Shown piece by piece: positions 5,037 through 59,100 of a stretch of DNA of 64,000 bases. The notes beneath the pieces were generated by a model that searched no databases, was not told where the DNA came from, and was given only the letters and a program-made list of their open reading frames with translations. Position 1 is the stretch's first letter. Every line of letters begins with the position of its first letter. Both the position numbers and the translations under genes were made by a program. Source of the DNA: Scyliorhinus canicula (Eukaryota); NCBI RefSeq assembly GCF_902713615.1, contig NC_052158.1, forward strand, positions 48,075,159 to 48,139,158, written 5' to 3'.

Positions 5037-5449
5037 GTGAGGTGGAATTATGTGGGCGGGGCAGGGGCACAGTTATTGTAATGTCTTCTTTAAAGATTTC
5101 ACCTGACGGCCTCGGCCTTTCCCGAAGCCTGGGCTTGGATTTGATAGTTTTGCCCAGTGCTGTGTCTGAGAGCTGAATTTGGGGTGTGCAGTCTGAGTGA
5201 GTGCAGTGTGTCTAATTTCCCAGGATAACCCTTCAATCAGCGACACTGAAGAAATGTTTTTCTTAGCTTCCAGCACTTCCTGCCCAGTGTGTTTTGTTCA
5301 CATCATTTGGGAAAACAAGTGGAGAAATTTCAAAATCTCTGTTGAATCAAATTTCTCCTGTGTTTTATATTAAACAGATAGTAAAAGTTTAAACTAATCT
5401 TTGTCAGCACGAGACAAGCTCACAGTGAATTCATAGGAATGGTGCAAAG

Positions 5450-7623
5450 CTGGACCTAAGTCTGGAGAATGAAGCCAGACAGGTGGTTGATGTGATGGTG
5501 GGAGAGCATTTTAGTGATAGCAAGCACAATATGATGCAATTTGTAATTGAAGGTTGTTATGGACAAGGAAATAGACAAATTGCAGAGAAAGGTCTTGGAT
5601 TGGAGGAGAGCGGCCTTCTATAAAATAAGGCAGAATCTAGTCAAAGTAGATTGGTGGGGAGATCTACAGAAGAGCAGTAGGGGCTGATCAAAGAGGAAAT
5701 GGGGAGGGTACAGGCCCAACATGTTCCCGCTAGGGTAATAGGAAGGAGTAACAAGCCCAGAGAACAAGCGATGACCAGAGATATTCAGAATACAATGAGA
5801 AGGAATACAATGACTTTTAATAAATACAAGGGGAGCAAATAAATAGAGGCAATAGTGGAGCACAGAAAATGCAAGATAAAGCTTAAGAACACAGTTAGGA
5901 GAGCAAAGAGGCGATATGAGAAATCTTGCTGGTAAAAGTAGGAAAATCCCCAAATATTCTATAAATGGAAGATAACTAGGGAAAAAGTAGGGGCCATTAG
6001 AGACCAGGGGGGAATCTGTGGGTGGATCCAGAGGACACTGGTGGGGTGTTAAATGAATATTTCACATCTGACTTTACCAAAGAGAATGAGGAGGCAGATA
6101 CAGAACTCGGTGAGGGAGACAGGTTATTGAGCAAGTTGCCACAGGGAGGGACACGATATTGGAGGTGTTGGCGAGCTTAAAAGTAGACAAATCTCCAGGT
6201 CCTGATACAACTGGGTCCCAGATTGCTGTGAGAAACGAGGGAAGAGATTGTAGGGGCCCTGATCCATATTTTTAATTCTTCTCTGGCCACGGGAGAGGTG
6301 TCAGAAGACGTGGTCCCACTATTTAAGAAAGGTTGCAGGGATAAACCAGGGATCTACACTTGGAGAGGCAAGGTTTGATCAGGAATTATCAGCATAGCTT
6401 TGTCAGAGGGAGATCATGCCTAACAAATTTGATTGAATGTTTTGAGCATGTGACTAAGTGTGTAGTTGAGGATAGTGCAGTTGATGTTGTTTACATTGAT
6501 TTCAGCAAAGCATTTGACGAGGTCCCACAATGGAGGCTTATAAAGAAGGCAAATGCACATGGGATACAGGGTAACTTGATAACGTGCATTCAAAGCTGGC
6601 TGAGCTGTAGGAATCAGAGGGTGATGACAGACAGCTGCTTTAGTGACTGGAAGCCAGTGTCCAGTGGCATAGCACAGGGATCTGGGATGGGTCCTCCATT
6701 ATTCATCATTTATATAAATGACTTGGATGTGGGGGGGGGGGGGGTAGGGTCACTAAGTTTGCGGATGACACAAAGATAGGCCGGGTGGTTAACAGTGAGG
6801 CTGAGAGGCGTGGGTTACAGGAAGATATCAACGGGATGGTCAAATGGACAGAAACGTGGCAAATGGAATTTAATCCTGGAAAGTGTGAGGTGTTACACTT
6901 TGGAAGGAGCAATTTGACAAGGAAATATTCAATGAATGGCACCACACTGGGAAGTCATGAGGAACAAAAGACCTTGGCGTGTTTGTAAATATATCTCTGA
7001 AGGTAGAAGGGCAGGTTAATAAGTGGTGAAAAAGGTATATGGTACAAAAACAAGGAAGTCATGTTGCAGTTATATAGAACATTGGTGAATCCACAGCTGG
7101 AGTACTGTGTGCAATTCTGGTCGCCACATAATAGGAAGGATGTGATTATAGTGGAGCAAGTAAAGAGGGGTTTTACCAGGATGTTACCTGGGAAGGAACA
7201 TTTAAGTTCTGAAGAGAGACTGAATAGGCTTGCTGAAACAGAGAAGACTGAGGGGTGGCCTGATCAAGGTATACAGAATTATGAGGGGCATGGACACGGT
7301 GGCATTTCCACTTAATTGAAGGGTCAGTTATGAGGGGACACAATTTCAAGGTGAGGGGTGTGAGGTTCAGGGGGGATTTGAGGAAAACCTTTTTACCCAG
7401 ACATTGGTGACAGTCTGGAACGCCCTGCCTGGGAGGGTAGTAGAGGCGGGTTGCCTCACATCCTTTAAAAAGTACCTGGATGAGTACTTGGCATGCCTTA
7501 ACATTCGAGGCTATGGGCCAAGTGCTGGCAAATAGGATTAGAATTGGCAGATCAGGTGCCTTTCATGCGGCGGTGCAGACTCGATGGGCTAAATGGCCTT
7601 TCTGCACTGTATTTTTCTATGAT
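5450..7623 (+). mobile_element. CR1/HER1-type LINE, decayed, in the intron of ZNF A
   Basis: RT motifs FVRGRSCLTNL, YIDFSKAFD, KFADDTK, LYRTLV.P.LEYCVQFWSP; CR1 3' tail. Confidence 0.92.
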
Positions 7624-7906
7624 AGCTCATTTTACATTCCACCCAAAGTTTTATTTGTCCTCACGTGACTGGGAAGATGGGGTCTGGGTGGAGTAAAGCC
7701 AGTAGAAATGCTGTCTGCTGCTGGTCACAATCCAGTGTCCTGCTGGAAAAAGAGGGCATGCGACAGTAAAGTGGGGAAAAGGAAAGGACTTGTATTTGAA
7801 ACCCTGCACAGGGGAACAGCAGACTATCGAACAGCCTCAAGCTGATATGTCAGCAAAGGAGGAGAGGGAGTTGGAGGAAATCATGTTTCCTTTTCCTGTT
7901 TTACAG

Positions 7907-8357
7907 AAGGATTGCACCATACTACACCAGACAATACAGAGAGGATAGACACCGCAGACAGATCCTGACCATCACCCAAAGAAACAACTGCAGAACTGTG
8001 GAAAGACATCCGGAGCCTTCACAGTATTGCTCAACAAGGAAAAGATTGTGCAGTGGAGTCAGTCAGGTTGAGCGAGCTTTGATACATCATCAGATCTGAA
8101 CCTTGTGGAACCTTCCATCAAAACCAACCCTTCTGGAGTTTCAGCTGTGAGGATCAGTCAGGGTGAGGCTGGGAAGGAATGAGAGGGGCTCCAAGTGTTA
8201 TGAGAGCTTCAATCATTCATCAAACCTCGTGAGCCACTGACTCATTCCGACAGGTGAAAGGCTGTTTGTGTCTGAAAAGAGCTCCAAGGGCTCAAAATAT
8301 CTCCTACCACACAGGCGCATCACTTATTCCACCTATAAAAAAAAAAACAGCAGGAAC
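7907..8357 (+). other. 5' UTR part of the last exon of ZNF A, containing decayed finger(s)
   Basis: Acceptor TTTTCCTGTTTTACAG|AAGG conserved in A, B (~28218) and C (~48013); stops in all three frames. Confidence 0.6.
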
Positions 8358-9864: not shown

Positions 9865-10173
9865 GGGGTGGCAAAGCGGTAAGCACTGTTGCCTCTAGCG
9901 CCAGAGACCCGGGTTCAATTCCGGCTTCGGGTGACTGTGGAGTGTGCACTTTCTCCGCATGCCAGTGTGGGTTTCCTCCGGGTGCTCCAGTTTCCTCTCA
10001 GTCCAAAGATGTGCAGGTTAGGTGGATTGGCCATGCTAAATTGTCCCTTAGTGTTCAAAGGTTAGGTAGGGTTAGATGAACAGGATGGGGATTGGGCCTT
10101 GGTAGGGTGCTCTTTCAGAGGATCGATGCAGACTTGATCGGCTGAATGGCCTCCCGCATTGTAGGGATTCTAT
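9865..10173 (+). mobile_element. V-SINE
   Basis: tRNA-like head, V domain, CR1-like tail. Confidence 0.85.
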
Positions 10174-10778
10174 GAAATCCTGCAGTGAAACACGACTTGG
10201 AGCAACTCTCATGAAGCAAGGACAACCAGTTGTCTTTCTCAAACCACTTCTATCTGCTCCAAAGTGTTTACAAAGGATGTTACTTCATTTGCAGATATCA
10301 CTTTGAAGTGAAGTACAAGCAAGGGAAGCAGATGCAAATAGTCAACGTGCTGTCGAGTGCTGCATTCCCGGTGCAGAGTGTGAAATCTTCCAGATTTCGG
10401 CAATAAGCAACAGTGCAACATGCTCTGAAATCATCAACCCAGCAGAGACACTATCTGAAAGACCAGCGTCTTGTTTAGATCAGGCAAACTCCACAACGCG
10501 ATGCAACTCTTCGAATGTTACAGGAAGTTGTAATGAAAGGATGGCCTGAAACCATGAAGGACACACCTGTTGCTGTAAGAGAGCATTGGGCAGACAGCTG
10601 AAGTGGTCACCCAAGATGGCATCTTGTGCAAAGGGACTGAGGTCATTATCCAGAAAGAGATGGGAAAAGGATGCAGAAGCGCATCCACATAAGGCATCAA
10701 GGAACCGTCTAATCTGAGGAAGGAAAGAGAAGTGCTTTATTGGTCAAACACAAGCAGTGAGATTAAGGACCACATCAC

Positions 10779-35094: not shown

Positions 35095-38064
35095 TGTAGC
35101 CATCTGAGATGGCCACCTGCAAAGGACCATGGGAATTATGGCCAAAACAGGAGTCAGACAGATACAGAGCTTCTATGTATTTGAAACACAGGTAGTTAGA
35201 CCTGATCGAAACCCCACCTTGTTTGCATTCTAATGGCCCATTTTCCCAGAACAATAGGACTACAATCAAGAAACCGATACAGCCACAGACTGATTGGCAC
35301 CACTTCCTTTACTGAGAGAGCAACCGCCAATGCCAATGACTGCTAAGGACCCGTCCAGCCACCAAGGCACCCACCCCTTTATTGGCCTTAATCGAAGGTA
35401 GTGATCGAAGCCTGTCGAATTATTGGGTCCAAGATTAAGGACTGCCCCAAAGAGCGTGAACCCCGAGAGGGATAAAAAGAGAAACAGCCATGCGTTCGGT
35501 CTCTTTTGGATCCGTACTGTGTCAGCCTCTTTTGGATCTGTCCTGTGCCAGCCCAACTGTAGCAGGAACAGCCAGCCAAGTTCAAGACCAATGATTGCTA
35601 CCTGACGGGTGAGCCCAGGAGAGACAGAGCCACTTCTTCAAACCAGCCACGTGAGATCAAGATAAAGGCCTTATCAATCTCCACAGCTCCGGTCGCCCTG
35701 AAGTTAAGGATAGTTTATTGTAGCTGATAGGTGTCGTTTAACTTGTAGTATATTGTGTTTTCATGTCGGAGTAACCCTTGTGTGTAAATAAACCATCTTT
35801 AAACTTGAACTGACTAACTGGTTGTGTGGTCATTTGGCCGATATACAGGAAACCCTTGTGGTTCAGTAAGAGAAATAGAAACACGCACAGTATTGGTGAT
35901 GCTGTTGGGATATAACATCATATTGGCGACTTTAAAGAGCAACATTATTCGCAACTTTTGACGGGACTCGATTTAGAAGTGATTTTGTCACTCCGAGAGA
36001 ACCCACAAAACTTTGAAATCCAATTGCATGAAAGAGAAAGAACCACAAGTGCAAGCCCCATATCGACCAAATCACCGAATATCGGAAGTGTGTACTAACC
36101 TGCATGCGTACGAACAGGGATATAAGGTAAACTCGTTGGATTGTGTCAAAACTATCGAGGGAATTGTGAACGCAAAGTAGCTTAGGCCATACCCGCAGTT
36201 CAAATCGCCACTTTATCCCCCTGGCCCAAATTCAATAGAAAACAGAGATTAGAGGTAGGAAACAAGATATTAGAAGCAATGGGCAAAAAAGCGATGGAAC
36301 GTTTAATGAACCCACAGGAACCCAAGGTCGCAGCGACCAACAGAGCAGAGCAATGCCCCATATGGGAGGAAGAGTTGAGGAAGTATTTGAAGAGGAAAGG
36401 ATTTTTTTGGTCCAATTTTTGTGCAAGTGATCAGTCAGGTCCAGGAGGAATAGGACAAACTTGGTGGGACAATCTAAGTGAGGTCTACGAGAAAAATGTA
36501 GGAAAGGTCCGAAAGCCGATGGCAATAGTGTCCTGTTTGGCACAGTTGCGAGGCACAGAGGAGGTCGTGAAGACGCTCCGCAGGCAGTTAGTTGAGAAAG
36601 ACAAGAAGAATGAGGCAAACAATAATGAAAGCGAAAAGATTATTAAGCAACTCCGGGAACAGTTAGCAGCTAAAGGTAAGGAGATGGCTGATGTGAAACG
36701 TGCACACCAATCTTGTTTAGTTCACCTTAGCAGCTTTCAGATCCAATACGATAAAGCCTACCAAGATACACAGCGCGCAGTCCTGGTACGAGAAGAGACA
36801 GAACAGCAGGTAGCCCAGTTAAGTAGTCAATGCGTGGATTTAAAAGCAGTTTTGCGAGCGCTCCACAGCTCCACTACAGAGCAGAGACAGAGCATAGTGG
36901 ACCATGCGAAATGCAGACAACAGATAGACAAATTACAGTCACTGTTTTCAGTGCAGAATGGATTTAGATATACCTTTGGACAAAATTTAGATGAGGAAGG
37001 TGCCCCCGATTGGCAAGAATTAAATGAAAGCGCCCAGAGATATGTAGAGGATAGAGGAAATCAGAAACGAGCCCCCCATGCCCCAAAAAGGAAAGCACCC
37101 GCACCACCGACTGCACAGGCAGCACACACCCCACTCACAATTCGACCCCCATGAATCCGGTCACCACACAGCGCAAGTCATCAGATCAGGGTGAGCCTGA
37201 TTTTGTTTATACCACCCCACTATCCATAACCCAGTTGAGAGAGGCTTGCACCAAAATTGTTCCATTCCAGCCCACCACAGCTTCTTTGAGGAAGTGCGGC
37301 AACAAAAAGTTATGTACGGTCTAGACAAAAGAGAGAAAGCCAAACTCATAGTTATGAGCCTTCGCCAGTCCGTAAGATCAGCTTTGCCTGAACCTCAAAA
37401 TGTAGCAGGAGGAACCCTACAGGAGGAAATGAAAACGGTCATTTTAGACACAATCGGGTATAACAAAGCAGATCCAGTTGAGGGTTTGAACCATTGTAGG
37501 CAAAAGAAGGGACAGCATCCAACCGCATTTGCTGGTCACCTTTGGAGTCATTTTATGGCAGTCTACGGACAATTGAACCACGCACACCTAAGTGAGGACG
37601 ACACCACTAAATGGTCCCGCACCTTAGTCTCGCATGCCACAGAAGCAGGTCAAAAGGTTTGTGTGAATTACGACCCTGCAGACCACACACATAATGAAGT
37701 TTGGGTTTTAAAGAAACTCTCCAGAGCATGGGAACAATCCCTACACAGACTGGCAGATCAGGAACAGATAGAAACAAATATGCACCCAGTCAGGACTAAC
37801 CAGGACCCAGCATGGGTAAACGAGGGTAGACATGGGAACCAGCACCCCAGAGCACAGGCATCACGAGGTTGCTACAGTTGTGGACACATGGGACATTATG
37901 CCCACGATTGCCGACAAAACCCTCCAAACCAGCAACCATCAAACCCACCATCTTGGAACAATGTTAGGCCCATAGACAGTGTTAGTGCCTGTTCAGACAA
38001 TTCAGCGGTCAACACCACAGATTGACAGTGTTCGGACTTACTCTGGGACAAATCAGGCAGACCT
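35095..38064 (+). mobile_element. ERV-like LTR retroelement 5' half: LTR 35095-35944, tRNA-Arg-like PBS, gag; pol deleted; inserted after a CR1 fragment (34970-35094)
   Basis: TGTAGCCA...GAGCAACA LTR; degenerate PBS TTCGCAACTTTTGACGGGACTCG; long gag ORFs. Confidence 0.85.
36279..38025 (+). pseudogene. gag: gag (frameshifted near 37150-37245) with a coiled-coil region and CCHC knuckle
   Basis: ORFs of 291 aa and 259 aa; CYSCGHMGHYAHDC fits Cx2Cx4Hx4C. Confidence 0.85.
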
Positions 38065-43622: not shown

Positions 43623-46239
43623 TGATATGCCATCAATTAAGACGGAGAATGCAGAGTGAATTAACTATGGCTTTAATTGACTTACAACAGAGCTGGCAGC
43701 GTGCCCCAGAATGAGGCAGTGTGAGAGGTCGCAGCTTATATACCCAGGCCCTAGGGGGAAGAGCCACAGGCAGAGCCAAAACCGTATAACGTGTAATCTA
43801 GTAGCAATACTGTACAACACGTACTACTGTGGCAGCACAATACAACACAGTGGTTTCACCACGTTCACCCCATTTAAAAAAAAGTCCGGCGGGGGTGAAG
43901 TGAACAAGTTGCGTCAGAGATTGAGTCTGACGGAGGCTTTGATTGTCCACTGTGACCGCCTCAGTTCCGGCTGTGGTGTGGGTATCGAAGTCGGCTGAAG
44001 CGTTGAGACCTGCGTGTCCGTGAGCCAGACAGCTTCTGTGTTCTCAGGTGGGTGGGCAGCAACGGGGGAAGGGGGTATAGGGTCGGGTCGAGTAGCAGTG
44101 GAGAGGGGAGGAATAGAGTCGGTAGTGCCGGTGACTGTCGCTGGGGAGCCTGCGGGTACCAAATCCCAAAGGGAGACTGTGTCCTCCCGCCCGTCATGGT
44201 GAGCCACGTGGGCGTACTGGGGATCCGTATGGAGGAGAAGGACCCGCTTGACCAGACGATCCGACTTATGAGTCCTCACATGTCATTGGAGGAGGACGGG
44301 CCCTGGAACCGTCAGCCAGATCGGGAGCGAGATCCCTGAGGTGGACCTTCTGGGGAAGGCAAACATCCTCTTGTGGGGGGTCACATTAGTAGCGGTGCAG
44401 AGAAGCGACTGGAGCGCATTGGGAAGGACCTCCTGTCAGCAAGAGACTCGGAGACCTCTAGACCACAGGGCAAGAAGGACGGCTTTCCAGACCGTCGCGT
44501 TCTCCCTCTCCACCTGTCCGTTCCCCCGGGGATTGGAGCTGGTAGTCCTGCTTGAGGCGATGCCCTTGCTAAGCAGGAACTGACGCAGCTCATCATTCAT
44601 GAAGGAGGAACCCTGATCACTCTGGATGTAAGTAGGGAAACTGAACAAGGTAAAGACACTGCTCAGGGCCTTGATGACTGTGCCAGATGCCATGTCTGGG
44701 CATGGGATGGCGAAAGGGAAAGATGAGTACTCGTCCAGGATGTTGAGGAGGTACATGTTACGGTCAGTGGAGGGGAGGGGCCCTTTGAAATCAATGCTGA
44801 GGCGTTCAAAGGGGCGTGAGGCCTTTACCAGGCGTTGTTTGGCTGGCCGATAGAAGTGCGGTTTGCACTCCGCGCAGACCTGGCAGTCCTTGGTCATGGT
44901 CCTGACCTCCTCGATGGAGTTAGGGAAGGTTGCAGGCCTTGATATAATGGAAAAGCCAGGTCACCCCCCGGATGACAGAGGTCATTGTGGAGGGCCCGCA
45001 GTTGGTCTACTTGTGCGCTGGCACAAGTATCGCGGGAAAAGGCATCTGGGGACTCATTAAGCTTCCCAGGACGATACTGAATATCATAGTTATAGGTGGA
45101 GAGTTCGATCCTCCACCTCAATATCTTATCGTTCTTGATCTTGCCCCGCTGTGTGTCACTGAACATGATGGCAACCGACCGTTGGTCAGTGAGGAGAGTG
45201 AATCGCCTGCCGGCCAGGTAATGCCTTCAATATCGCACAGCTTCTACGATGGCTTTGGCTTCATTTTCAACTGAGGAGTGTCGAATTTCGGAAGCCTGGA
45301 GGGTACGGGAGAAGAAAGCCATGGGCCTCTACCTGGAACGGGATGGATTCATCCACAGCATGCATCGTGGCTTTGGCAATATCCGCCTTGATACGGTCGT
45401 AGGCCAGGCGAGCCTCAGCCGTCAGGGGAAAAACGGTGGATTTGATGAGTGGGCGGGCCTAGTACGAAAAGAACCCCAGGCATCTCTTCAGGGTCTTGGG
45501 GCAGTTGGGGGGTGGGGGGAGAGTTGCAGGAAGGGGCGCATGCGGTCGGGGTCGGGCCCTAGGACTCCATTTTCCATGACGTAGCCAAGGGTGGCTAGTC
45601 GGGTTGTGTGGAAAACGCATTTCTCCTTATATGTCAGATTAAGGAACTGGGCAGCGTGGAGGAATTTCTTGAGGTTAGCGTCGTGGTCCTGCTGATCATG
45701 GCCGCAGATGGTGACATTATTTAGATACGGGAATGTGGCCTGCAGCCTGTACTGGTCAACCATTCGGTCCGTCACTCACTGGAAGACCAAGACCCCATTA
45801 GTGACGCCGAAGGGAACCCGGAGAAAGTGGTAGAAGCCAGCTGCCTCCAAGGCAGTGTAAAGGTGGTCCTCCGGGCGGATAGGGAGCTGATGGTACGCGG
45901 ACTTCAGGTCCACGGTGGAGAAGACCCGGTACTGCGCAATCTGATTGACCATGTCAGATATGCGTGGGAGGGGGTACGCATCGAGCTGCGTGTAACGGTT
46001 GATGGTCTGACTGTAGTCGATGACCATCCGATGCTTCTCCCCAGTCTTGACGACCACCACTTGAGCTCTCCAGGGGCAGTTACTGGCCTCTATGATCCCT
46101 TCCCGCAGGAGCCGCTGAACCTCCGACCTGATGAAGGTCATGTCCTGAGCACTGTTGTCTGCTCTTAGTGGCGACGGGCTTCCAGTCTGGGGTGAGGTTG
46201 GCGAAGAGCGAGGGAGGGCAGCACAGTGGTTTCACCAGA
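43623..46239 (-). mobile_element. Gypsy element with intact termini, 5-bp TSD ACTTC, RT-RH-IN and 3' LTR 43623-43862; gag, protease and nearly all of the 5' LTR deleted
   Basis: RT RMVIDYSQTINR...DLKSAYHQ; integrase IDFKGPLP...SDQG...GQVERENA; TSD at 43618-43622 and 46240-46244. Confidence 0.92.
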
Positions 46240-47373
46240 ACTTCATCACTTCCTTGGATGTTGTGAATCTTCCTCTTCTGATCTGCTGTCAAACACATCC
46301 AAGGCTACACATCCCACACTGATGGTGTCAGTTTGAAACCCTCCGAGGATGAAGAATGCTATTCCCACACTAGAAATCTCTGTCAAACGTTTACCAGGGG
46401 AACTGAGACAGCAGCTGCAATAAGTGAGGTTTTATTCAGATGGGACAATGACAAGTTTAAATTCCCACCTGAGCTGCTGCTCAAAGTCGCTCCGTTTCCC
46501 CGGTCAGTTTCCCAAACTTCAGGAAACTCCTGTTACTGCAGAAATATTTGGATTGTCTGTGAGAGACGTCAATCAGAGAGCCCACCCACTCTGCCCATTC
46601 TCTCCTCTTCCTCTACCACAGCTGCTTCACTTCCTGTAGGGACTCAAAACCAAGTCAGGAAATGGTGAGTGAAGGAGCAGAATTTACAATCATTACATTG
46701 CACAATATCCACACTAATGTTCAGGCAGTCTGACTATCCTGTGGGCAATCAGCTGTGGAAATGCCCCTTATGCTGTGTGAGAAGATCCAGCTCACAGACC
46801 TGTTTACTCGGTGCTTTGTGCTGAGCTGTTTGATTGGCTGTGTGTTGGATATTGAGGGTGTTTATTGGAAGCATTTCCCTTCTGATTTACAGACTGAGTT
46901 TTGTTGATGGGTCATTGCTGAATATGAGATGGTGAGGTGGAATTATCTGGGAGGGACAGAGACACATTTATTCAAATGTATTTTACTGTCTTCTTTAAAG
47001 ATTTTACCTGGAGGCCTCAGCCTTTCCCAGAAGCCTGGGCTTGGATTTGATAGTTTTGCCCAGTGCTGTGTCTGAGAGCTGAATTTGGGATGTGCAGTCT
47101 GAGTGAGTGCAGTGTATCTTAATTTCCCAGGATAAACCAGAACCCTTCAATCAGCGACACTGAAGCAATATTTTCCTTGGCCTCCAACACTTCCTGCCCA
47201 ATGTGTTTTCTTCAAAATAATTTGGGAAACAAGAGGAGAAATCTCAAGATCTCCATTGAATTAACATTTCTCCTGAGTTTTTATATTAACCGATATTGGA
47301 AGGGTAAAACTGGTCTTTGCCAGCACAACACAAGCCCATAGTAAACGGATTTCCTGTTTATACTCCACTTGAG

Positions 47374-47749: not shown

Positions 47750-48444
47750 CTGATTATTGTTTCCATTGCTCTCACTGCCTGGGAAGATGGGAACTGGGTG
47801 GAGGACAGAAAGTAGCCACATTGTCTGGTGCTGTTCACAGTGCCCCTGCTGGAAACAGGGTGTGTGACAGTCAATTGAGGGAAAAGTGTATCTGATCCCC
47901 AGACAGAGGAATAGCATACTGACACTCACTGTGGAACTAACTGAGGAGTCAGCCTGTTCAGCAATGGGGGGAGGGAGTTGGCGGAAATCATATTTCATTT
48001 TCCTGTTTTACAGAAGGATTGCACCGTACTATACCAGAGAATACAGAGAGGATAAACACCACAGAAACACCATCACCCAAGGAACAAATGCACAACTGTG
48101 AGAAGACAGCCAGTCTCTTCACAGCATTGCTCAATACAGAGAAGGTTGGATAGTGAAACCATCATCTGGTAATCGGTTAGGTCGGAGAGCTTTGACATAT
48201 CATCCGATCTGAAACTGGTCAGTGGTGTGGAATCTTCCATTAGAACCAACATTTCTGAAGATTCAGTTGCGGTTAATCGATCAGGGTGAGGATGGGAAGA
48301 AGTGAGTGGTGAGAGCTTCAATCATTGACCAAGTCTCATGAAACAATGACTCATTCCTACAGTTGAGAGGCTGTTCAAGAGTGAGGTGTGTGAGGACGGC
48401 TCCACGGTCTCAGTTGTACCAGCTGTAACCACAGGGACAGCCAC

Positions 48445-49236
48445 ATGGATGAGAAACTGTTCAAGTGTGCGTTTTGTGACAAATCATTCACATCCTCATC
48501 CCACTTTCGGAACCACCAATTCACTCACACTGGAGAGAAACCGTTTACGTGTGAGGTTTGCAACAAATCATTCTCAGTGTCATCGCGTCTCCACAGACAC
48601 AAACGCATTCACACCGGGGAGAAGCCATTCCGCTGTGATGTGTGTGAGAAAGCTTTCACACAGTTATCGAACCTCCAGGTCCATCAGAGAGTCCACACAG
48701 GGGAGAAACCCTTCAAGTGTGAGTTTTGTGATAAAGCTTTCTCAACATCTACAGATTTCTTGATACACCAGAGCATTCACACAGGGGAGAATCCCTTCAG
48801 GTGTGAGTTGTGTGACCGAGCCTTCACACGTTCATCGGCACTAGTGCAACACCGACGCATTCACACTGGTGAGAAACCATTCACCTGTGAAGTGTGTAAG
48901 AAATCATTCTCCCAGTCATCAATCCTCCGTGAACACCAACGCATTCACACTGGGGAGAAACCATTCACCTGTGAAGTGTGCAAGAAATCATTCTCCCAGT
49001 CATCGAACCTCCGTGAACACCAGCGCATTCACACTGGGGAGAAACCGTTCACCTGTGAAGTGTGTAAGAAATCATTCTCCCATTCATCGAACCTTCATGA
49101 ACACCAACGCATTCACACTGGGGAGAAACCATTCACCTGTGAAGTATGTAAGAAATCATTCTCCCAGTCATCGAACCTCCGTGTCCACCAACGCATTCAC
49201 ACTGGGGAGAAAGCATTGAAGTGTAAGGTAAGGTAA
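48445..49236 (+). CDS. C2H2 zinc-finger protein, 9 fingers (unit C); unspliced form 263 aa
   Basis: ATG-initiated intact array; the tenth finger is interrupted by an insertion. Confidence 0.9.
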   Translation: MDEKLFKCAFCDKSFTSSSHFRNHQFTHTGEKPFTCEVCNKSFSVSSRLHRHKRIHTGEKPFRCDVCEKAFTQLSNLQVHQRVHTGEKPFKCEFCDKAFSTSTDFLIHQSIHTGENPFRCELCDRAFTRSSALVQHRRIHTGEKPFTCEVCKKSFSQSSILREHQRIHTGEKPFTCEVCKKSFSQSSNLREHQRIHTGEKPFTCEVCKKSFSHSSNLHEHQRIHTGEKPFTCEVCKKSFSQSSNLRVHQRIHTGEKALKCKVR

Positions 49237-49655
49237 AGTCTCCATAGTCCCAGATGACTGTAGGCTGCTTTCCCCTTTGATGGGGAGAGCTGACTGATGG
49301 TGATTTAAACTGAGGATTACCACATCTCAATCTCCCCTTGATGAGCAGCACTGGTTAGCACTGTTGCTTCACAGCTCCAGGGTCCCAGGTTCGATTCCCG
49401 GCTTGGATCACTGTGTGGAGTCAGAATGTTCTTCCAGTGTCTGCGTGGGTTTCCTCCCACAAATCCTGAAAGACGTGCTGTCAGGGAATTTGGAAATTTT
49501 GAATTCTCCCTCTGTGTACCCAAACAGACGGCAGAATGTGTTGACTAGGGGCTTTTCACAGTAACTTCATTGCAGTCTTAATGTAAGCCTACTTGTGACA
49601 ATAAAGATTATTATTATGGGCCAAATGACTTAATTCTGCTCCTACGTCTTATGGA
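49225..49655. mobile_element. Compound insertion in finger 10: retroposon 3' end with TAAGG-repeat tail, a SINE (49343-49616) and a CR1 tail
   Basis: The finger sequence AAGTG(T) resumes as AAGTGAGGTGTGTGAC at ~49660. Confidence 0.7.
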
Positions 49656-49659
49656 AGAC

Positions 49660-49930
49660 AAGTGAGGTGTGTGACTGAGCCTCATACAGTCAGCAATGCT
49701 CACGAAACACTGACACATCCACACTGAGGAAAAGATGTTTCAGTGTGAAGTGTGACAAAGTATTCTCAGTTAACATGGATGAGGATTTCAACAGTTGATG
49801 GACTAAAGTGGGGGTAATGGACTAATGCGCACATCAACACATTCACACAGGAGATAAACCATTCATGTGCGAGGTGTATGACAAATCATTCTCAAATTAT
49901 CAGACCTTCACAGACACATTCACACTGCGG
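49660..49930 (+). pseudogene. Fossil zinc fingers of unit C
   Basis: Degenerate HT(G/E)(E/D)K.F.CEV repeats. Confidence 0.75.
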
Positions 49931-50092
49931 CTCACCTGCCTCACTTACACTGAGAGTCATCTGTGCTGTTTACCTGCCAGTGCTCACACAAGGGAGCTGG
50001 CCTTCCAAAGCACTATCTGTCTCAGCAGTGTCTGTCTCCAACCTCTCCCACCATCTTTCCAATCGTTTCAAGACAGTCAATTTAATTTTTGA

Positions 50093-50892
50093 TGTGGCGA
50101 TGCCAGCGTTGGACTGGGGTGGGCACAGTAAGATGTCTTACAACACCAGGTTAAAGTCCAACAGGTTTTTTTTGAATCACTAGCTTTCGGAGCACTGCTC
50201 CTTCCTCAGGTAAGTGAAGAGTTGGGATCCAGAAACACATATATAGACAAAGTCAATGATGCAACATGATACTTTGAATACGAGTCTTTGCAGATAATTA
50301 AGTCTTTACAGGTCCAGGCGGATCGACTGGAGAGAGGGATAATCACAGGTTAAAGAGGTGTGAATTGTCTCAAGCCAGGACAGTTGGTAGGATTTTGCAA
50401 GCCCAGGCCAGATGGTAGGATTTTGCAAGCCCAGGCCAGATGGTGGGGGCGTGAATGTAATGAGACGTGAATCCACGGTTCCGGTTCAGGCCGTATTCAT
50501 GTGTGCGGAACATGGCTATCAGTTTGTGCTCGGCGATTCTGTGTTGTCGCTTTTGGTACATTGGTGAGACCATGCAGACGCTGCGACAACTAATGAATGG
50601 ACATCGCATGACAACCGCTAGACAGGAATGTTCCCTTCCAGTCGCGGAACACTTCAGCAGTCAAGGGCATTCAGTCTCTGATCTTCGGGTAAGCGTTCTC
50701 CAAGACGGCCTTCAGGACCTGGGAAGGCTTAATTACCTGCAAAGACTCACATTCAAAGTATCACCTTGCATCATTGAATTTATCTATATATGTGGTTGTG
50801 GAACCCACCTCTTCACTCACCTGAAGAAGGAGCTGCGCTCCGAAAGCTGGTGATTCAAAAGAAACCGGTTGGACTTTAACCTGGTGTTGTAA
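50093..50892. mobile_element. Penelope-like element fragment with inverted pLTR arrangement and 14-bp TSD
   Basis: GIY-YIG peptide WYIGETMQTLRQLMNGHR...PVAEHF; TSD AATTTAATTTTTGA at 50079-50092 and 50893-50906. Confidence 0.9.
50821..50856 (+). ncRNA. Minimal hammerhead-ribozyme motif in the Penelope pLTR (second copy 50174-50209, minus strand)
   Basis: CTGAAGA, GGAGC/GCTCC stem II, GAAA, short imperfect stem III, TC. Confidence 0.65.
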
Positions 50893-51273
50893 AATTTAAT
50901 TTTTGACCAGATCGCCAAACATCACCAAAAGTAGACATCAGTTTGTATAGAAGCTGCTGCTTATGCACAAGTTTTCCTGGACAAGAGAGAAATATGTGAA
51001 TATTAAATATATATATGTTAATTTTTGAAACGTGAAATCCTAGTTTTTGAGCTGAAAATACAGAAAGATCACATTATGTTTCTTTACTAATTTTATGAGG
51101 TTTTGTAAAATACAGTTATCTTGAAGATGGCTCTGACTTTGTCATAAGATTAATCCCTCAACCAGACGTTTTCCTGGGTGCAGACTGAAAACTGTCTCCA
51201 GCACTCGGAAAATGTGTCACAAGGCAGCACAGCAAAGTCTGGACAATGATTAATTTTTCATTTCTTCCTTTAG

Positions 51274-51421
51274 GCAAAGCTGGCCAATAGCGTCCAGGAG
51301 CGCTCGTTGACTGGAGAGCGGGTTCCATACAGCAAGGAACAGGAGGAGTTCACGAGGAAGCTGTTGGGCCTCTCCAACCCCACAATAACCAACGGTGGAT
51401 CAGCTATGGGAATGAGTAAAG
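51274..51421 (+). CDS. Phase-0 to phase-1 coding exon resembling the post-Myb segment of Harbinger Myb/SANT (NAIF1/MSANTD-like) proteins
   Basis: TTTCTTCCTTTAG| acceptor, AAG|GTAATG donor, open frame AKLANSVQERSLTGERVPYSKEQEEFTRKLLG. Confidence 0.65.
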
Positions 51422-51512
51422 GTAATGTCAGCAGCTTGTGTGTTTAAACCATCAGTAGGAGAGTTAATTTATGCGACTAAAGATAATAATTGTGACTTTC
51501 TTCCTGTGACAG

Positions 51513-52225
51513 ATACACAGGTGTCCATGAACACATCAGCTGGTGATGGAGGAGAGTTGGCAGCAGCGTACGAGATTCCGGAAAGGGCTGGTGAGGAAGG
51601 GACGGAGGTGAATACCTCTCAGCAATGTGGCATGGAGGAGGGAGAGGAATGTCCGGAGGCTAAGATGTCTGATTTGGAGGGTAATGTTGGTGAACTAAAG
51701 TTAAATATTGTGGCTTGTGTGAAGGAGGAAGCCTGTGATGATCTGGCTGCTGTGGTGGAGGTAGCACGCTTGGAACCTTTGGGAGGTGAGGAACCTGAGG
51801 CCTTGGGAGCAGAAGCTCCACCGTCTCCACGAGCACACGGACAGTACCAGGCCTTTGCTGCTGGTGAAGAAAATATAAAGGATCTGAAACCTGAGTGGTT
51901 AGATCAAGAACAGGTTCAAAGTACAGAGAGTTATCAGGCCACTTCTAACTTGCTTCAGCAAACTTCGACCGAATTTAAGATGGATCTTAGCCAGAATCTA
52001 CAAAGAGACAATGGGATTCTTCAACATCATCTACAAAGAGACAACGAGATTCTTCAGCATCATCTACAAAGAAACAATGAGATTCTTCAGCAGCATCTAC
52101 AGAGAAACAATGAGATTCTTCAGCATCAGCTACAAAGAAACAATGAGATTCTTCAACAGCATCTACAAAGAAACAATGAGATTCTTCAGCAGCAGAATGA
52201 GAGTCAGTGTCAACTTCTGCAATGA
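51513..52225 (+). CDS. Terminal exon: acidic region plus 6x 11-aa coiled-coil repeat
   Basis: TTTCTTCCTGTGACAG| acceptor in phase with the previous exon; 237 open codons. Confidence 0.65.
51998..52195 (+). repeat. 33-bp coding tandem repeat x6 (LQRNNEILQQH)
   Basis: Seen directly in the sequence. Confidence 0.95.
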
Positions 52226-52724
52226 AACGAGTGAAATGAGGCAGATTTATCTCAGATTGTAGCCCCTGCACCTTCTAGTCAGCAGCAGCCCAGTGCAGAG
52301 ACATCTGCTGCTGGACACACCTCTGGTACAGGAGACGTCACATCACGGCGACGGGGGAGAGGAGGGGGAGGCGGGGAGACACAGCAGGCTTTCGGGTCCA
52401 TCCCTCCAACATTGCCTCATCAACCCCATTATCGTCCCCTTCCAAGAGATATTTTTCTGTCTGGATTTTTGCCATTACTGAGAGCCTCTCCATCTTGAGT
52501 ACAATGGCAGCAGAAACATGAATCCGTGAGCCCTATCCCCCTGATCACAGCACCTCCCATTTTCGTGGTATCAGGAATGGGCCAGGTTCGCCATTTACAC
52601 GTTTCACAGAAGCAACTGTGCATAGAAAGCAGCAGCTGCCTCCATTCGTGTGGTTCTGAGTGAGAGATGTCTGCAAACCGACTTGTGCAGGTTTGACCTG
52701 GGTACCCCTCAGGGTTTTACACTT

Positions 52725-53170
52725 GTGACTTGGGAATGACTCTGTTACTCAGGAAGTGACATGTGGAGTTACACTAACTCAAAGAGTAACACCACAACTT
52801 GGGGAGTAACTGTTACTCAGGGAGTGACTCTCGGACATGTGGAGTTATGGTGTGACTTGGGAAGTGACACTGTGACACGTGGAGTAACACTGTGACTTAT
52901 GGGGAGTAGCACTGATGTGGGGAGTAACACTGATGTGGGGAGTAACACTGATGTGGGAAGTAAAGTTAAATTTTGTGGCTTGTGTGAAGGAGGAGGCCTG
53001 TGATGATTCGGCTGCTGTGGTGAAGGGAGGGCACTTGGAACCTTTGGGAGGTGAGGAAGTAACCCTGACGTGGGGAGTAACATGGTGACGTGGGAGTTAC
53101 ACCGTGACTCGGGCAGTTACGCTGTGACTAGGGCAGTTACGCCGTGACTCAGAGAGTGATTCTGTGCCCA
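52725..53170. repeat. Degenerate ~19-20-bp minisatellite (GTGACTTGGGAGTAACACT-like)
   Basis: Seen directly in the sequence. Confidence 0.85.
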
Positions 53171-53484
53171 GGGCAGAAATTGTGCTTGGGAGTTCCTCTT
53201 GCTTGAGAAGTGACTATGGCTCAGAGATTGGCTCCAAAGTGACCAACTCTGAGAAAACAAAATAAGGGACATTTGTGTGTGGGGAGGGGGTGACGGGGGT
53301 AACAGCAGGGGCTGTCAACTGTGAGGGAGGAGGCGGGTTATTACCTGACCTGAATATTTCCAGTCCCTCTGCACATGTGTCAATGACATCTCTGCGCTCA
53401 TACACCATCTTCCTGATCCTGTGTTGGAAATACTCTGGAATGTTTATTTAGTCCCATTAAGTTTTGTCAGTGTTTTTAATGCTT

Positions 53485-56176: not shown

Positions 56177-59100
56177 TGTAGTGATATGCATAAACAACAG
56201 TATGTCTAAATATGTATAGCCTCCAACCAGTAGGTGTCAGGCATGTAATACCACGTGACACGGGAGCCTGGATGAGAAATCGTGGCCAGTCGTATTTGTA
56301 TTAGTTCCAGTTCGATAACATTAGTTTCCTCCCCACAGTTTATTATACTATAATCAAATTAACTAGTCTTGAACTAGATGTGCTTTAGTATGCCGACTCA
56401 GTAATTGTCTCTGTACAAGAACATAACATGGTACCAGGTTCATCAAAAACTAAAAGATCAGAAGTGTGAAGATTTGAAGCACACAGTCTCAAATTTGATG
56501 GAACAGTGCTTCAAGGAATATGTGGAACATTGAAGGTAATCTCTGAAAACGCAAACCAGTGCAAGAAGAAGATAGAAAGTTTAAAAACTCCTGAACAACT
56601 TTATGTAACCAGTAATGTTGATGGCAATTGGCACATATTTAAACAACAGTTTACACTGTGGCAGCTCAAGGATTGCAGGCGCAGTCAGACGAAAGAAATA
56701 TAGTGTTGCTAATGATAGCAGGCCCACAAGCAATTGAGTTTAATAACACCTTTGTACATAATCAAGAGGACAATAGTAATAGCTTTGATGCCGTCATTAA
56801 AAAATTTGATTAACATTGCACGCCGCAAAAGAATATAACTTTTGAGCGAGTCATATTTAGAACCCGCATGCAGAAGACAGGTGATTCCTTCGATAGATTT
56901 CTTCACAACCTCAAGTTAAAAGCATAAAATTGTAACTTTGCAACTTTAAAATCCTTGATAATTTGGGATCAAATTGTCTTTGGAGTGAATGATAATAAGA
57001 TGGGTGAATGTCTCTTACGGGAGAATTTGCTTCAGTTAGAAGACACAATTAAGAATTGCCACACGAGTGAACTGGCTGCCCAACATACCAGCATACTGCA
57101 CAAGGTTTTGGTGCAAAAATTGGGAGTGATGCCGACGCCATAGATCTTGTGATGCACTCAAAAGTAAAATATGGTCTCAGCAGCGGCGGCCATTTTAAAC
57201 ACTAGGCAGAAACATCCATTACATGCAAAATATGTGGAAACAAGCACCTACCGAGGTAATGTCCAGCTTATGGCAAAGTTTACACAAAGTGCAATGGAAA
57301 AAAAATCATTTTGCGAAAAAATGTTTCACAAGCAAAAAGGTTAATGTAGGGAAGTCAATTAATACAATTAACATTAATTTGGAAGGCACATATTTTATTG
57401 CTATAGTCTTGGATGAAGACAGAGCAAACACACTCAAAAAGAATAAAATGTCACCTACAAGAAGAAAAAGTGATAAAAATGACAATGGAAAAGTGATAAA
57501 GGACAAAATGGACAGTTATTTGTTGATAAATCGATCGCTTATTGTGAAGTTAGATACAGGAGCAAGAGCATAAGCATCAGTGATATCAAGACGATGCAAT
57601 AAAAACAGAATATTGAACAAACCAATTTTCTTGAAGGACTATAATGGCCAGAAAATTGACACATTGGGAATGTGTGAGTTGGATGTACAAGATGCAGTAA
57701 AATAGCAAAAGATAAAGTTCACATATTAAAATTCTCGATAGTAGCTGAAAATCCTGAGTTATTAGGTGATGATGCATGTGAATTATTGGAACTGGGGAAA
57801 AGAGTGTATAGCACTGACAACTGTGCACTGAGCACGCACAGTGGATCAGTGGAGTCCATTGTGCAGGCTTTTCCAGAAATATTCCAGGGTGCTGGTGTTT
57901 TACCTTTCACTTACAAGATTTAATTTAAAAAATGATACTCAACCAGTGATACATGTGCCGAGAAGAGTCCCAGCACCATTACGTGACTGTCTAAAGGTTG
58001 AATTAAATAGGATAACACATATTGGAGTTATAAAAAGGATTGAAGAGCCGACAGATTGGGGCAATTTGATGGTATGCGTAAAAGAAAGAAGCAATGATCT
58101 TCGAATATGCATGGATCCCAAAGATTTAAATGCAAATATAAAAAGCGAACACTACCGCCCTCTGAAAGAGAGGAGACCACAAGTGAGATGTCTGGTGCAA
58201 AATATATCAGCAACCTAGATGCTTCACAAGGATTCTGCCACCTCAAGCTAGATGAAGAAAGTACCAAGTACTGTACGTTCAATTCTCCGTTTGGCAGATA
58301 TTGCTTTCTTTGTATGCCCTTTGGTCAGAAATATCCCATAGAGCGATGGAACATATTGTTGAATGACCATATAATTTGGGGTTACACCCAAGAGGAACAC
58401 ACTAACAGGCTAATTAGGATGTTGCAAAATATCAGAAGAAATGGGCTACGACTCAATCAGGCCAAATGTCAGCTTGGTGTAAAGGAAATAACGTTCCTAG
58501 GATATAGATTATCTGGTCAAGGGATAGAGCCTGATGACATTAAAATGCAAGCCATCATAAATATGTCTCGACCTACAGATAAAAAGGGAGTACTAAGAGT
58601 ACTGGGCATGATAAACCTCCTTGGAAAGTTCGGAACAAATCTCTCAGCAATGACAACATGTCTTAGAGATGTCCTGAAGAAAGTGAACAACCTCACTTGA
58701 ACTGAACATCATGAACAAGAATGGATAATACTAAAAGCTCCAATAACCACACCAGTATTAACATTTTCTGATCCAACAAAAAATACCAAGATTTTAACAG
58801 ATGCATCAAAAGATGGTCTAGGTGCAGTATCGCTGCAACAGGAAAATTGTAGTGATTGGAAACCAGTAGCATATGCTTCAAGATCTATGACAGAATCTGA
58901 ATGTCGTTATGCATAAATAAAAAAAGGAGTGTTTAGGGCTAGTGAATAGTTTGGAGAAATTCCATAGCTACTTATATGGTCTACCTACACATGATGTTAA
59001 TTGTCGAGACAGGTCATAGACCATTGGTTGCAACAGTCAAGAAGAACCTCAGTGAGATGTCCCCTTGCATTCAACGTCCATTGATGAAACTTCAGAGAGA

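Follow-up and report, generated by a model that had tools for sequence, protein, structure and literature searches.

How does a run of zinc fingers come to be followed by exons of a Myb/SANT-type gene, and do the two make one working gene? This question is raised by a locus in Scyliorhinus canicula, contained in a stretch of 64,000 nucleotides (nt) that was analysed as a whole and is called the window here (assembly GCF_902713615.1, contig NC_052158.1, positions 48,075,159 to 48,139,158 of the forward strand; coordinates below are counted from its first letter). A sequence-only reading of the window had predicted that an array of C2H2 fingers is spliced in frame to two downstream exons through a donor site given by a transposable element, and that a new zinc-finger (ZNF) architecture had thereby been made at this place. 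In this study, we conclude that the locus is an expressed three-exon gene on the plus strand, in which nine fingers are spliced to two exons of a Myb/SANT-type gene. It is one of dozens of shark ZNF-plus-tail genes, which are annotated under uninformative names and are apparently undescribed. The whole explanation developed below, an expressed gene whose fusion is of family origin and whose donor was shifted by a short interspersed element (SINE), is in our judgement very probable.

The coding parts of the gene are the following.

48445 to 49227, plus strand: coding exon with the ATG, nine C2H2 fingers and the beginning of a tenth (..ALKCK); open reading frame (ORF), Pfam matches and an intact orthologue in Scyliorhinus torazame, with a ratio of nonsynonymous to synonymous substitution rates (dN/dS) of 0.15.
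51274 to 51421, plus strand: exon 2, 148 nt, which in relatives is the segment after the Myb domain; joined on both sides in transcript contigs.
51513 to 52225, plus strand: exon 3, 713 nt including the stop codon, encoding an acidic disordered region and then a long helix; open frame, homology and a structure model, dN/dS 0.38.

The plus-strand ORF from 48445 to 49236 has 263 amino acids (aa) and nine zf-C2H2 matches in the Pfam scan (E 2.8e-56); the encoded protein has ten zf-H2C2_2 matches. The fingers are of the Krueppel type, tandem C-x2-C-x12-H-x3-H units with TGEKPF-like linkers and a period of 84 nt. This frame is left 261 codons after the ATG at a donor in the context TGT AAG^GTAAGG (the GT is at 49228, and ^ marks the exon boundary), and is taken up again beyond a big intron of 2046 nt at the pyrimidine-rich acceptor ...ttcctttag^G, whose AG ends at 51273. 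Exon 2 is an open frame, the second intron (51422-51512, 91 nt) has GT..AG ends, and the codon split across it is G^AT for Asp, by which the frame is kept. Exon 3 is open in the matching phase as far as the TGA stop at 52223-52225, and a scripted join of the three exons gave 547 codons and a stop. On re-check, every number of the sequence-only reading, from coordinates and exon sizes to phases and the 547-aa ORF, was correct.

Both joints that this model predicts, 49227^51274 and 51421^51513, were found in transcripts. They are present with GT..AG ends in assembled contigs of five runs from the same organism (X1, X5, X7, X15 and X2), where they skip 2046 nt and 91 nt, respectively. Single contigs of 194-253 nt reach from the end of the finger exon (40-72 nt) across the complete exon 2 into exon 3. 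In three further runs, raw stranded oligo-dT reads assign the RNA to the plus strand, with a depth of 2-8x across the finger exon and both tail exons and of about 0 in the unique intron stretches 49652-50045 and 50834-51227. Two raw reads cross the first junction (one in each of two runs) and six cross the second (5+1). Use of the out-of-frame donor at 49233, which had been named from the letters as an alternative, was not seen among the transcript contigs and reads. Read-through directly past the donor is unmeasurable, the stretch being high-copy SINE.

It might be argued that the source of the junction contigs is another, near-identical member of the family at a different place in the genome, since the family is large, fingers 6-9 are nearly identical repeats and the contigs are short. 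However, the contigs match the locus at 97% or more, with 0-1 mismatches in the listed exon-2 pieces, and in all but one of the five runs they extend over the final 72 nt of the finger exon, including the locus-specific ..GEKALKCK. The tails of the nearest annotated paralogues are only about 75-79% identical to that of the window gene. We therefore give almost no credence to such a source.

The gene is also preserved in a second species. The top protein match was scyTo_0006081 of S. torazame (P0001), which is 89% identical and contains ..GEKALKCK^AKLAN.. without any change. The locus of P0001 (L001) aligns collinearly with the window (94% and 91% identity) and has the same start codon, nine intact fingers, the donor and the adjoining repeat and transposon, and its tail exons are open. 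The annotated model of scyTo_0006081 (L001 6001-14432) joins pieces of a module upstream of the gene to the last finger and skips eight intact fingers; this skipping looks like an annotation error, and L001 in fact encodes the same nine-finger protein. Between S. canicula and S. torazame, non-coding divergence is 5-8% and that of the finger exon 2.0%. By the Nei-Gojobori method, dN/dS is 0.15 in the finger exon, where fingers 3-9 have 0 nonsynonymous and 6 synonymous changes, and 0.39 in the tail, with 28.5 nonsynonymous versus 18.5 synonymous changes and a neutral ratio of about 3.7 to 1. By these values, both parts of the gene are under purifying selection, the fingers strongly and the tail moderately. 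The comparison had been proposed with the original prediction, and its outcome is constraint rather than neutral decay.

These results bear on another explanation, in which the spliced transcript is noise or the output of a decaying copy and the gene works, if at all, through a ZNF-only protein that stops at TAA 49236. Expression is low (2-8x), the tail has an omega of about 0.4 and read-through just past the donor is masked by the SINE, all of which would suit this explanation. On the other hand, the three exons are intact in two species, nonsynonymous changes in the tail are below the neutral expectation, unique intron coverage is near zero between equally covered flanking exons, and the tail has been kept in dozens of paralogues. 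We consider it very unlikely that the transcript is noise, and prefer a gene that is expressed and maintained as a whole.

Whether the fusion was made at this locus was assessed through its relatives. A search with the exon-3 peptide returned 46 shark proteins, with E-values down to 3e-121, and a second search admitting longer proteins returned 58 homologues, from S. torazame, S. canicula, Mustelus asterias, Cetorhinus and Carcharodon; the protein encoded by the window itself was not among the proteins returned. Many of the homologues are RefSeq models named 'zinc finger protein NN-like', of up to 575 aa, and many have N-terminal fingers followed by a ..C-K/E^V-K-L-A-H-N.. junction and a homologous tail. 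What marks the family, and was found in the window gene, is a finger exon that ends after Cys-x and is spliced in phase 0 to an exon starting V/A-K-L-A, together with a homologous post-Myb segment, an acidic region and a Q/N/L-rich helical repeat. The tail tree splits into two clades: one (support 99) holds the non-ZNF parental genes of Scyliorhinus and Mustelus, and the other (support 93) holds all remaining rows, mostly finger-linked and including Cetorhinus. Within the second, the window gene is paired with P0001 (support 99). The same ZNF-plus-exon arrangement, which was to be sought in chondrichthyan sequences according to the sequence-only reading, thus occurs in Scyliorhinus, Mustelus and lamniform sharks. 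Its claim of a new architecture at this locus is contradicted by the dozens of paralogues in at least four shark genera, which already stand in the automatic annotation. No description of a family of ZNF genes with a Myb-gene tail was found in the literature searched on shark zinc-finger families.

The relatives also point to the source of the tail. In the Pfam scan, the encoded protein has no Myb_DNA-bind_5 domain (PF13873) and the tail exons gave nothing above threshold. PF13873 was found only in relatives (P0038, P0047-P0050, the last of them from Chiloscyllium, and P0205). Of these, P0038 of Cetorhinus consists of the domain and the tail, and P0048 of Cetorhinus and P0047 of Carcharodon have two to three fingers ending in ..GEKPFKCE^, then the Myb domain, exon 2 and the tail. 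Exon 2 of the window gene is 69% identical to residues 150-197 of P0048 (E 1.5e-16). An exhaustive search for Myb plus exon 2 found full-length relatives lacking fingers in Scyliorhinus (LOC119952172, 389 aa), Mustelus, Heterodontus, Pristiophorus, Pristis and Narcine; their layout is a Myb domain, the post-Myb segment, an acidic region, a Q/N/L-rich helix and a basic end. Because of the spread of these relatives, the parent appears to be an elasmobranch-wide host gene. Remoter matches (E 1e-10 to 1e-14) are named NAIF1, MYPOP-like or Myb/SANT-like, and their alignments reach the exon-2 segment; residues 66-197 of P0048 align with NAIF1- and MYPOP-like-named proteins through query positions 120-128, inside exon 2. 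The tail exons are, on this homology, the remainder of a Myb/SANT gene with the Pfam domain Myb_DNA-bind_5, of the NAIF1/MYPOP type, the likeness being at the level of the domain family. At that level the exon-2 alignments also back the by-eye assignment of AKLAN.. to the segment after a Myb domain. NAIF1 is derived from a Harbinger Myb-like gene, and MYPOP and ZSCAN20 are putative cases (PMC9392472).

The exon for the Myb domain itself is gone from the window. No Myb/SANT exon was found by tblastn (E<0.5) in the big intron or in the rest of the window, which confirms its absence between 49930 and 51273 as read from the letters. A decayed Myb exon was likewise found neither in the window nor in four carcharhiniform paralogue loci, and among five loci only that of Cetorhinus (L004) has a Myb exon. 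Against L004 the window intron aligns in three pieces: 49945-50092 with L004 6656-6803, 50893-51002 with 6790-6904 and 51015-51273 with 10466-10719. The roughly 3.5 kb of L004 between the second and third pieces hold the Myb exon (about 10171-10425). Two features of the intron follow from this alignment.

51002 to 51015, plus strand: scar of a deletion of about 3.5 kb that included the Myb exon, by alignment to Cetorhinus L004.
50138 to 50892, no strand assigned: transposon with 178-nt inverted arms, seen as a repeat pair in the window and absent from the Cetorhinus locus.

The paralogues L002 and L005 of S. torazame align straight across the breakpoint at 51002-51015, and because they have it in common the deletion would be older than the expansion of the family. 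The Myb domain is thus kept only in relatives such as P0047 and P0048, and a finger array has taken its place here, as had been proposed. The acceptor of the Myb exon in Cetorhinus is 3 nt before the Myb gene's own ATG, a position that fits the capture of a downstream gene by read-through splicing. The arms of the transposon are 88% complementary, and RNA reads show opposite-strand joints across them; an ORF inside the element is presumably GIY-YIG-like, judged by eye.

The origin of the donor needs to be considered separately for the family and for this locus. Around the donor the following features were recognized.

49228 to 49232, plus strand: the used donor, GTAAG(G); the GT is probably from the Val codon of finger 10, and the bases that follow probably from a SINE tail.
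49233 to 49335, minus strand: reverse SINE fragment whose tail end adjoins the donor; a second copy lies in the Mustelus locus L003 at 5210-5306 (88% identity).
49352 to 49617, plus strand: tRNA-type SINE, 5'-truncated, followed by a repeat fragment to about 49657; at least 15 copies in the window.
49667 to 49749, plus strand: remainder of finger 10, slightly decayed but of full length; its two TGA stops and 1-nt deletion are also found in S. torazame.
49750 to 49960, plus strand: old decayed fingers, collinear with the intron starts of paralogues by alignment and unit comparison.

In the paralogues L002 and L005 and in L003 of Mustelus, the intron starts with GTATGTGAC or GTTTGTGAC after AAG^. 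The Cetorhinus intron starts with GTTTGTATC, its donor being C-E^GTTTGT. These intron starts are the finger's own V-C-D codons. L002, L003 and L005 have no repeat at the donor and yet are spliced at the same codon, and because of this the donor of the family is one that lies latent in each finger as the GT of its Val codon, and not the gift of a transposon. At the window locus, the intron starts with GTAAG GTAAAGTC, and the second copy of the repeat, in the Mustelus intron, begins with GTAAAGTC. The repeat piece next to the donor occurs only once in the window, and its boundary (about 49233) is therefore set by the single Mustelus copy. Read depth over the SINE at 49352-49617 is about 1e5, with many reads diverging at 49352 and 49617. 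The repeat complex occupies about 49233-49657, and after it the finger is taken up again at 49667 with GTGTGTGAC. The AAGTG--AGGT before 49667 is a possible target-site duplication of AAGTGTAAGGT on the left; if it is one, the GT would belong to the host and positions +3 to +6 to the repeat. At 49749/49750 stands TGTGAA^GTGTGAC, after which the unit is short and heavily decayed, like the remainder that follows the donor in paralogues; this is the probable ancestral donor. We consider it somewhat more likely than not that finger 10 was coding until the insertion and that the old donor stood one finger further on, the insertion having truncated the array and moved the donor to the same position in finger 10, where the host would supply its GT and the repeat its positions +3 to +6. 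Of the proposal that the donor was donated by a transposable element, a part therefore stands: the insertion probably relocated and strengthened the donor at this locus, whereas the donor of the family is intrinsic to the finger codons.

Taken alone, the window might have suggested that the whole chimera was made on the spot, a retroposon having cut a ZNF gene and donated a donor that reached orphan Harbinger-type exons. The sequence from about 49233 is indeed a repeat with its tail adjoining the donor, the remainder of finger 10 beyond the repeat complex is lightly decayed, and the insertion probably created the donor used today. However, because the same junction occurs in dozens of paralogues, in Mustelus and in lamniform sharks, the fusion was not created at this locus. 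The repeat-less splicing of L002, L003 and L005, the single clade of all ZNF-linked tails and the Myb-exon breakpoint common to paralogues also speak against local assembly, which we regard as highly improbable.

We instead propose that the gene was assembled in steps. In the first step, a ZNF gene upstream of a duplicate of the Myb gene would have been spliced from the latent donor within a finger (the GT of Val in C-x-V-C) to the acceptor 3 nt before the ATG of the Myb gene, and lamniform sharks would keep this ZNF-Myb-tail form. In the second, a deletion of about 3.5 kb in the lineage of catsharks and houndsharks would have removed the Myb exon, so that the fingers were spliced straight to the post-Myb exon. 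In the third, the whole ZNF-tail unit would have multiplied into dozens of copies. Later, at the window locus, a SINE complex would have landed in finger 10; splicing would then have shifted to the corresponding GT in finger 10, which the SINE tail would have made into the stronger site AAG^GTAAGG, and this change of donor probably shortened the array by one finger.

The tail that was acquired in this way has two distinct parts and a relic beyond them. Residues 311-440 are acidic (isoelectric point 4.05), and the AlphaFold model is without confident structure there, the predicted local distance difference test score (pLDDT) being mostly below 50. The last 111 residues are modelled as one helix with a pLDDT of 96-98.

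51985 to 52215, plus strand: six to seven 33-nt repeats of one repeat family, encoding the hendecad xHLQRNNEILQ; the helix includes the hendecads.
52226 to 52390, plus strand: relic of a longer tail in the same frame, past two in-frame stops; tblastn alignments extend to 52345, and the C-termini of P0016 and P0030 serve for comparison.

The register of the hendecad repeats differs by one 33-nt unit between the two Scyliorhinus species. On the structure model, the 111-residue helix probably forms a coiled coil for self-association. The fingers would target DNA in place of the Myb domain, and the tail would serve as a partner-binding or effector surface. The tail of the window gene's subclade ends at ..CQLLQ: P0001, P0003, P0004 and P0007, which belong with the window gene to a subclade of 12 rows in the tail tree, end at the same ..LLQ and are without the basic RGRGRRR-type end. 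The frame after the stop aligns with the longer C-termini of other family members (..SQIVAP..SAETSAAGH..), with about four codons missing as judged by eye. In addition, exon 3 has a partial duplicate: 102 nt of it (51692-51793) recur at 52957-53058 with 90% identity, within 52773-53182; the duplicate sits among 40-nt direct repeats, and the arrangement is also found in S. torazame.

Several points weigh against the explanation preferred here. Raw junction reads are few (1+1 and 5+1), and support for the junctions comes mostly from assembled contigs, whose library type is only presumed to be RNA. The encoded protein is a prediction, known from the gene and its transcripts alone, and DNA binding, dimerisation and an effector role are predicted functions only. 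The tail evolves fairly fast (omega about 0.4), and in this subfamily its basic C-terminus, which other members retain, is gone. As to the donor, the two copies of the proposed target-site duplication do not match perfectly, and they are separated by several nested repeats. The shift by one finger rests on unit count, unit length and degree of decay, and alignment scores do not settle which decayed unit matches the donor finger of the paralogues.

Other features of the window concern the wider ZNF family or its surroundings.

47771 to 48390, plus strand: conserved upstream module of about 620 bp, probably promoter and 5' untranslated region (5'UTR), common to other ZNF genes.

The stretches directly before the two other ZNF ORFs of the window (7660-8266, plus strand; 28472-27819, minus strand) are 70-77% identical to this module, and those before paralogues in S. 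torazame, Mustelus and Cetorhinus are 75-79% identical to it. RNA of the plus strand was seen over 48076-48440. The module looks like a promoter/5'UTR cassette common to a wider family of shark ZNF genes, some of which have no tail. Contigs of several runs break exactly at the AG 48440/48441, 4 nt before the start codon; this would fit the acceptor of a 5'UTR exon, yet RNA coverage is continuous from about 48076. Further plus-strand RNA was seen at 46500-46930. The long ORFs at 36279-38025 (plus strand), 44436-46141 (minus strand) and 57223-58700 (plus strand) are taken by us, by eye, to be pieces of retrotransposon gag, integrase and reverse transcriptase.

The locus would illustrate how a new transcription-factor architecture can be assembled stepwise: a latent donor within a finger captures a downstream gene, the DNA-binding exon is deleted and the unit is multiplied. 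It would also be a concrete case of a transposon insertion that resets a splice site without breaking the reading frame. If it is true that the tail is an effector or oligomerisation module, sharks would possess a lineage-specific ZNF system comparable to the KRAB-ZNF genes. A broader reading, which we offer tentatively and to which we give less than an even chance, is that sharks built their own large and fast-expanding ZNF family on the acidic and coiled-coil tail of a domesticated Harbinger-type Myb gene, that this tail is a self-associating effector, and that the family is the counterpart of the KRAB, SCAN and FiNZ genes. Within this reading, KRAB-domain families appear to have been lost in sharks, the tail may bind a HARBI1-like partner and the family may be engaged with transposons.

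The gene can be compared with known systems at increasing distance. Its nearest counterparts are the S. canicula models 'zinc finger protein 234-like', '43-like', '98-like' and '709-like' and the LOC1444970xx models of Mustelus asterias, which have the same architecture. In the S. canicula and Mustelus models and in P0001 the junction is ..C-K/E^V/A-K-L-A.., as here, and the homologous tails are 62-89% identical. Set against these models, the window gene has nine fingers and a SINE complex at its donor, and it belongs to the subclade whose tail ends early (..CQLLQ). The lamniform proteins P0047 and P0048 agree with it in their N-terminal fingers, in where the donor lies within a finger, and in exon 2 and the tail, but they keep the Myb_DNA-bind_5 exon between fingers and exon 2, which the window gene is without. 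The parental elasmobranch gene and the lamniform members resemble NAIF1 and MYPOP in matching PF13873 and in aligning with proteins named NAIF1 and MYPOP-like (E 1e-10 to 1e-11) over the Myb domain into the exon-2 segment, whereas the window gene has no Myb domain. ZSCAN20 carries its fingers at the C-terminus and has kept its Myb-like domains; the shark gene has N-terminal fingers and, of the Myb gene, only the non-Myb tail. ZSCAN20 (SCAN, Myb/SANT-like and C2H2 domains), listed as a putative Harbinger-derived gene (PMC9392472), is a precedent for C2H2 fingers and a Harbinger-type Myb-like gene in one protein. Unlike the KRAB, SCAN, FiNZ and ZAD families, the shark genes have their module at the C-terminus and of a different domain, with a repressor or oligomerisation role that is only putative. 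Like those families, they form a large and tandemly expanding C2H2 family with one common non-finger module.

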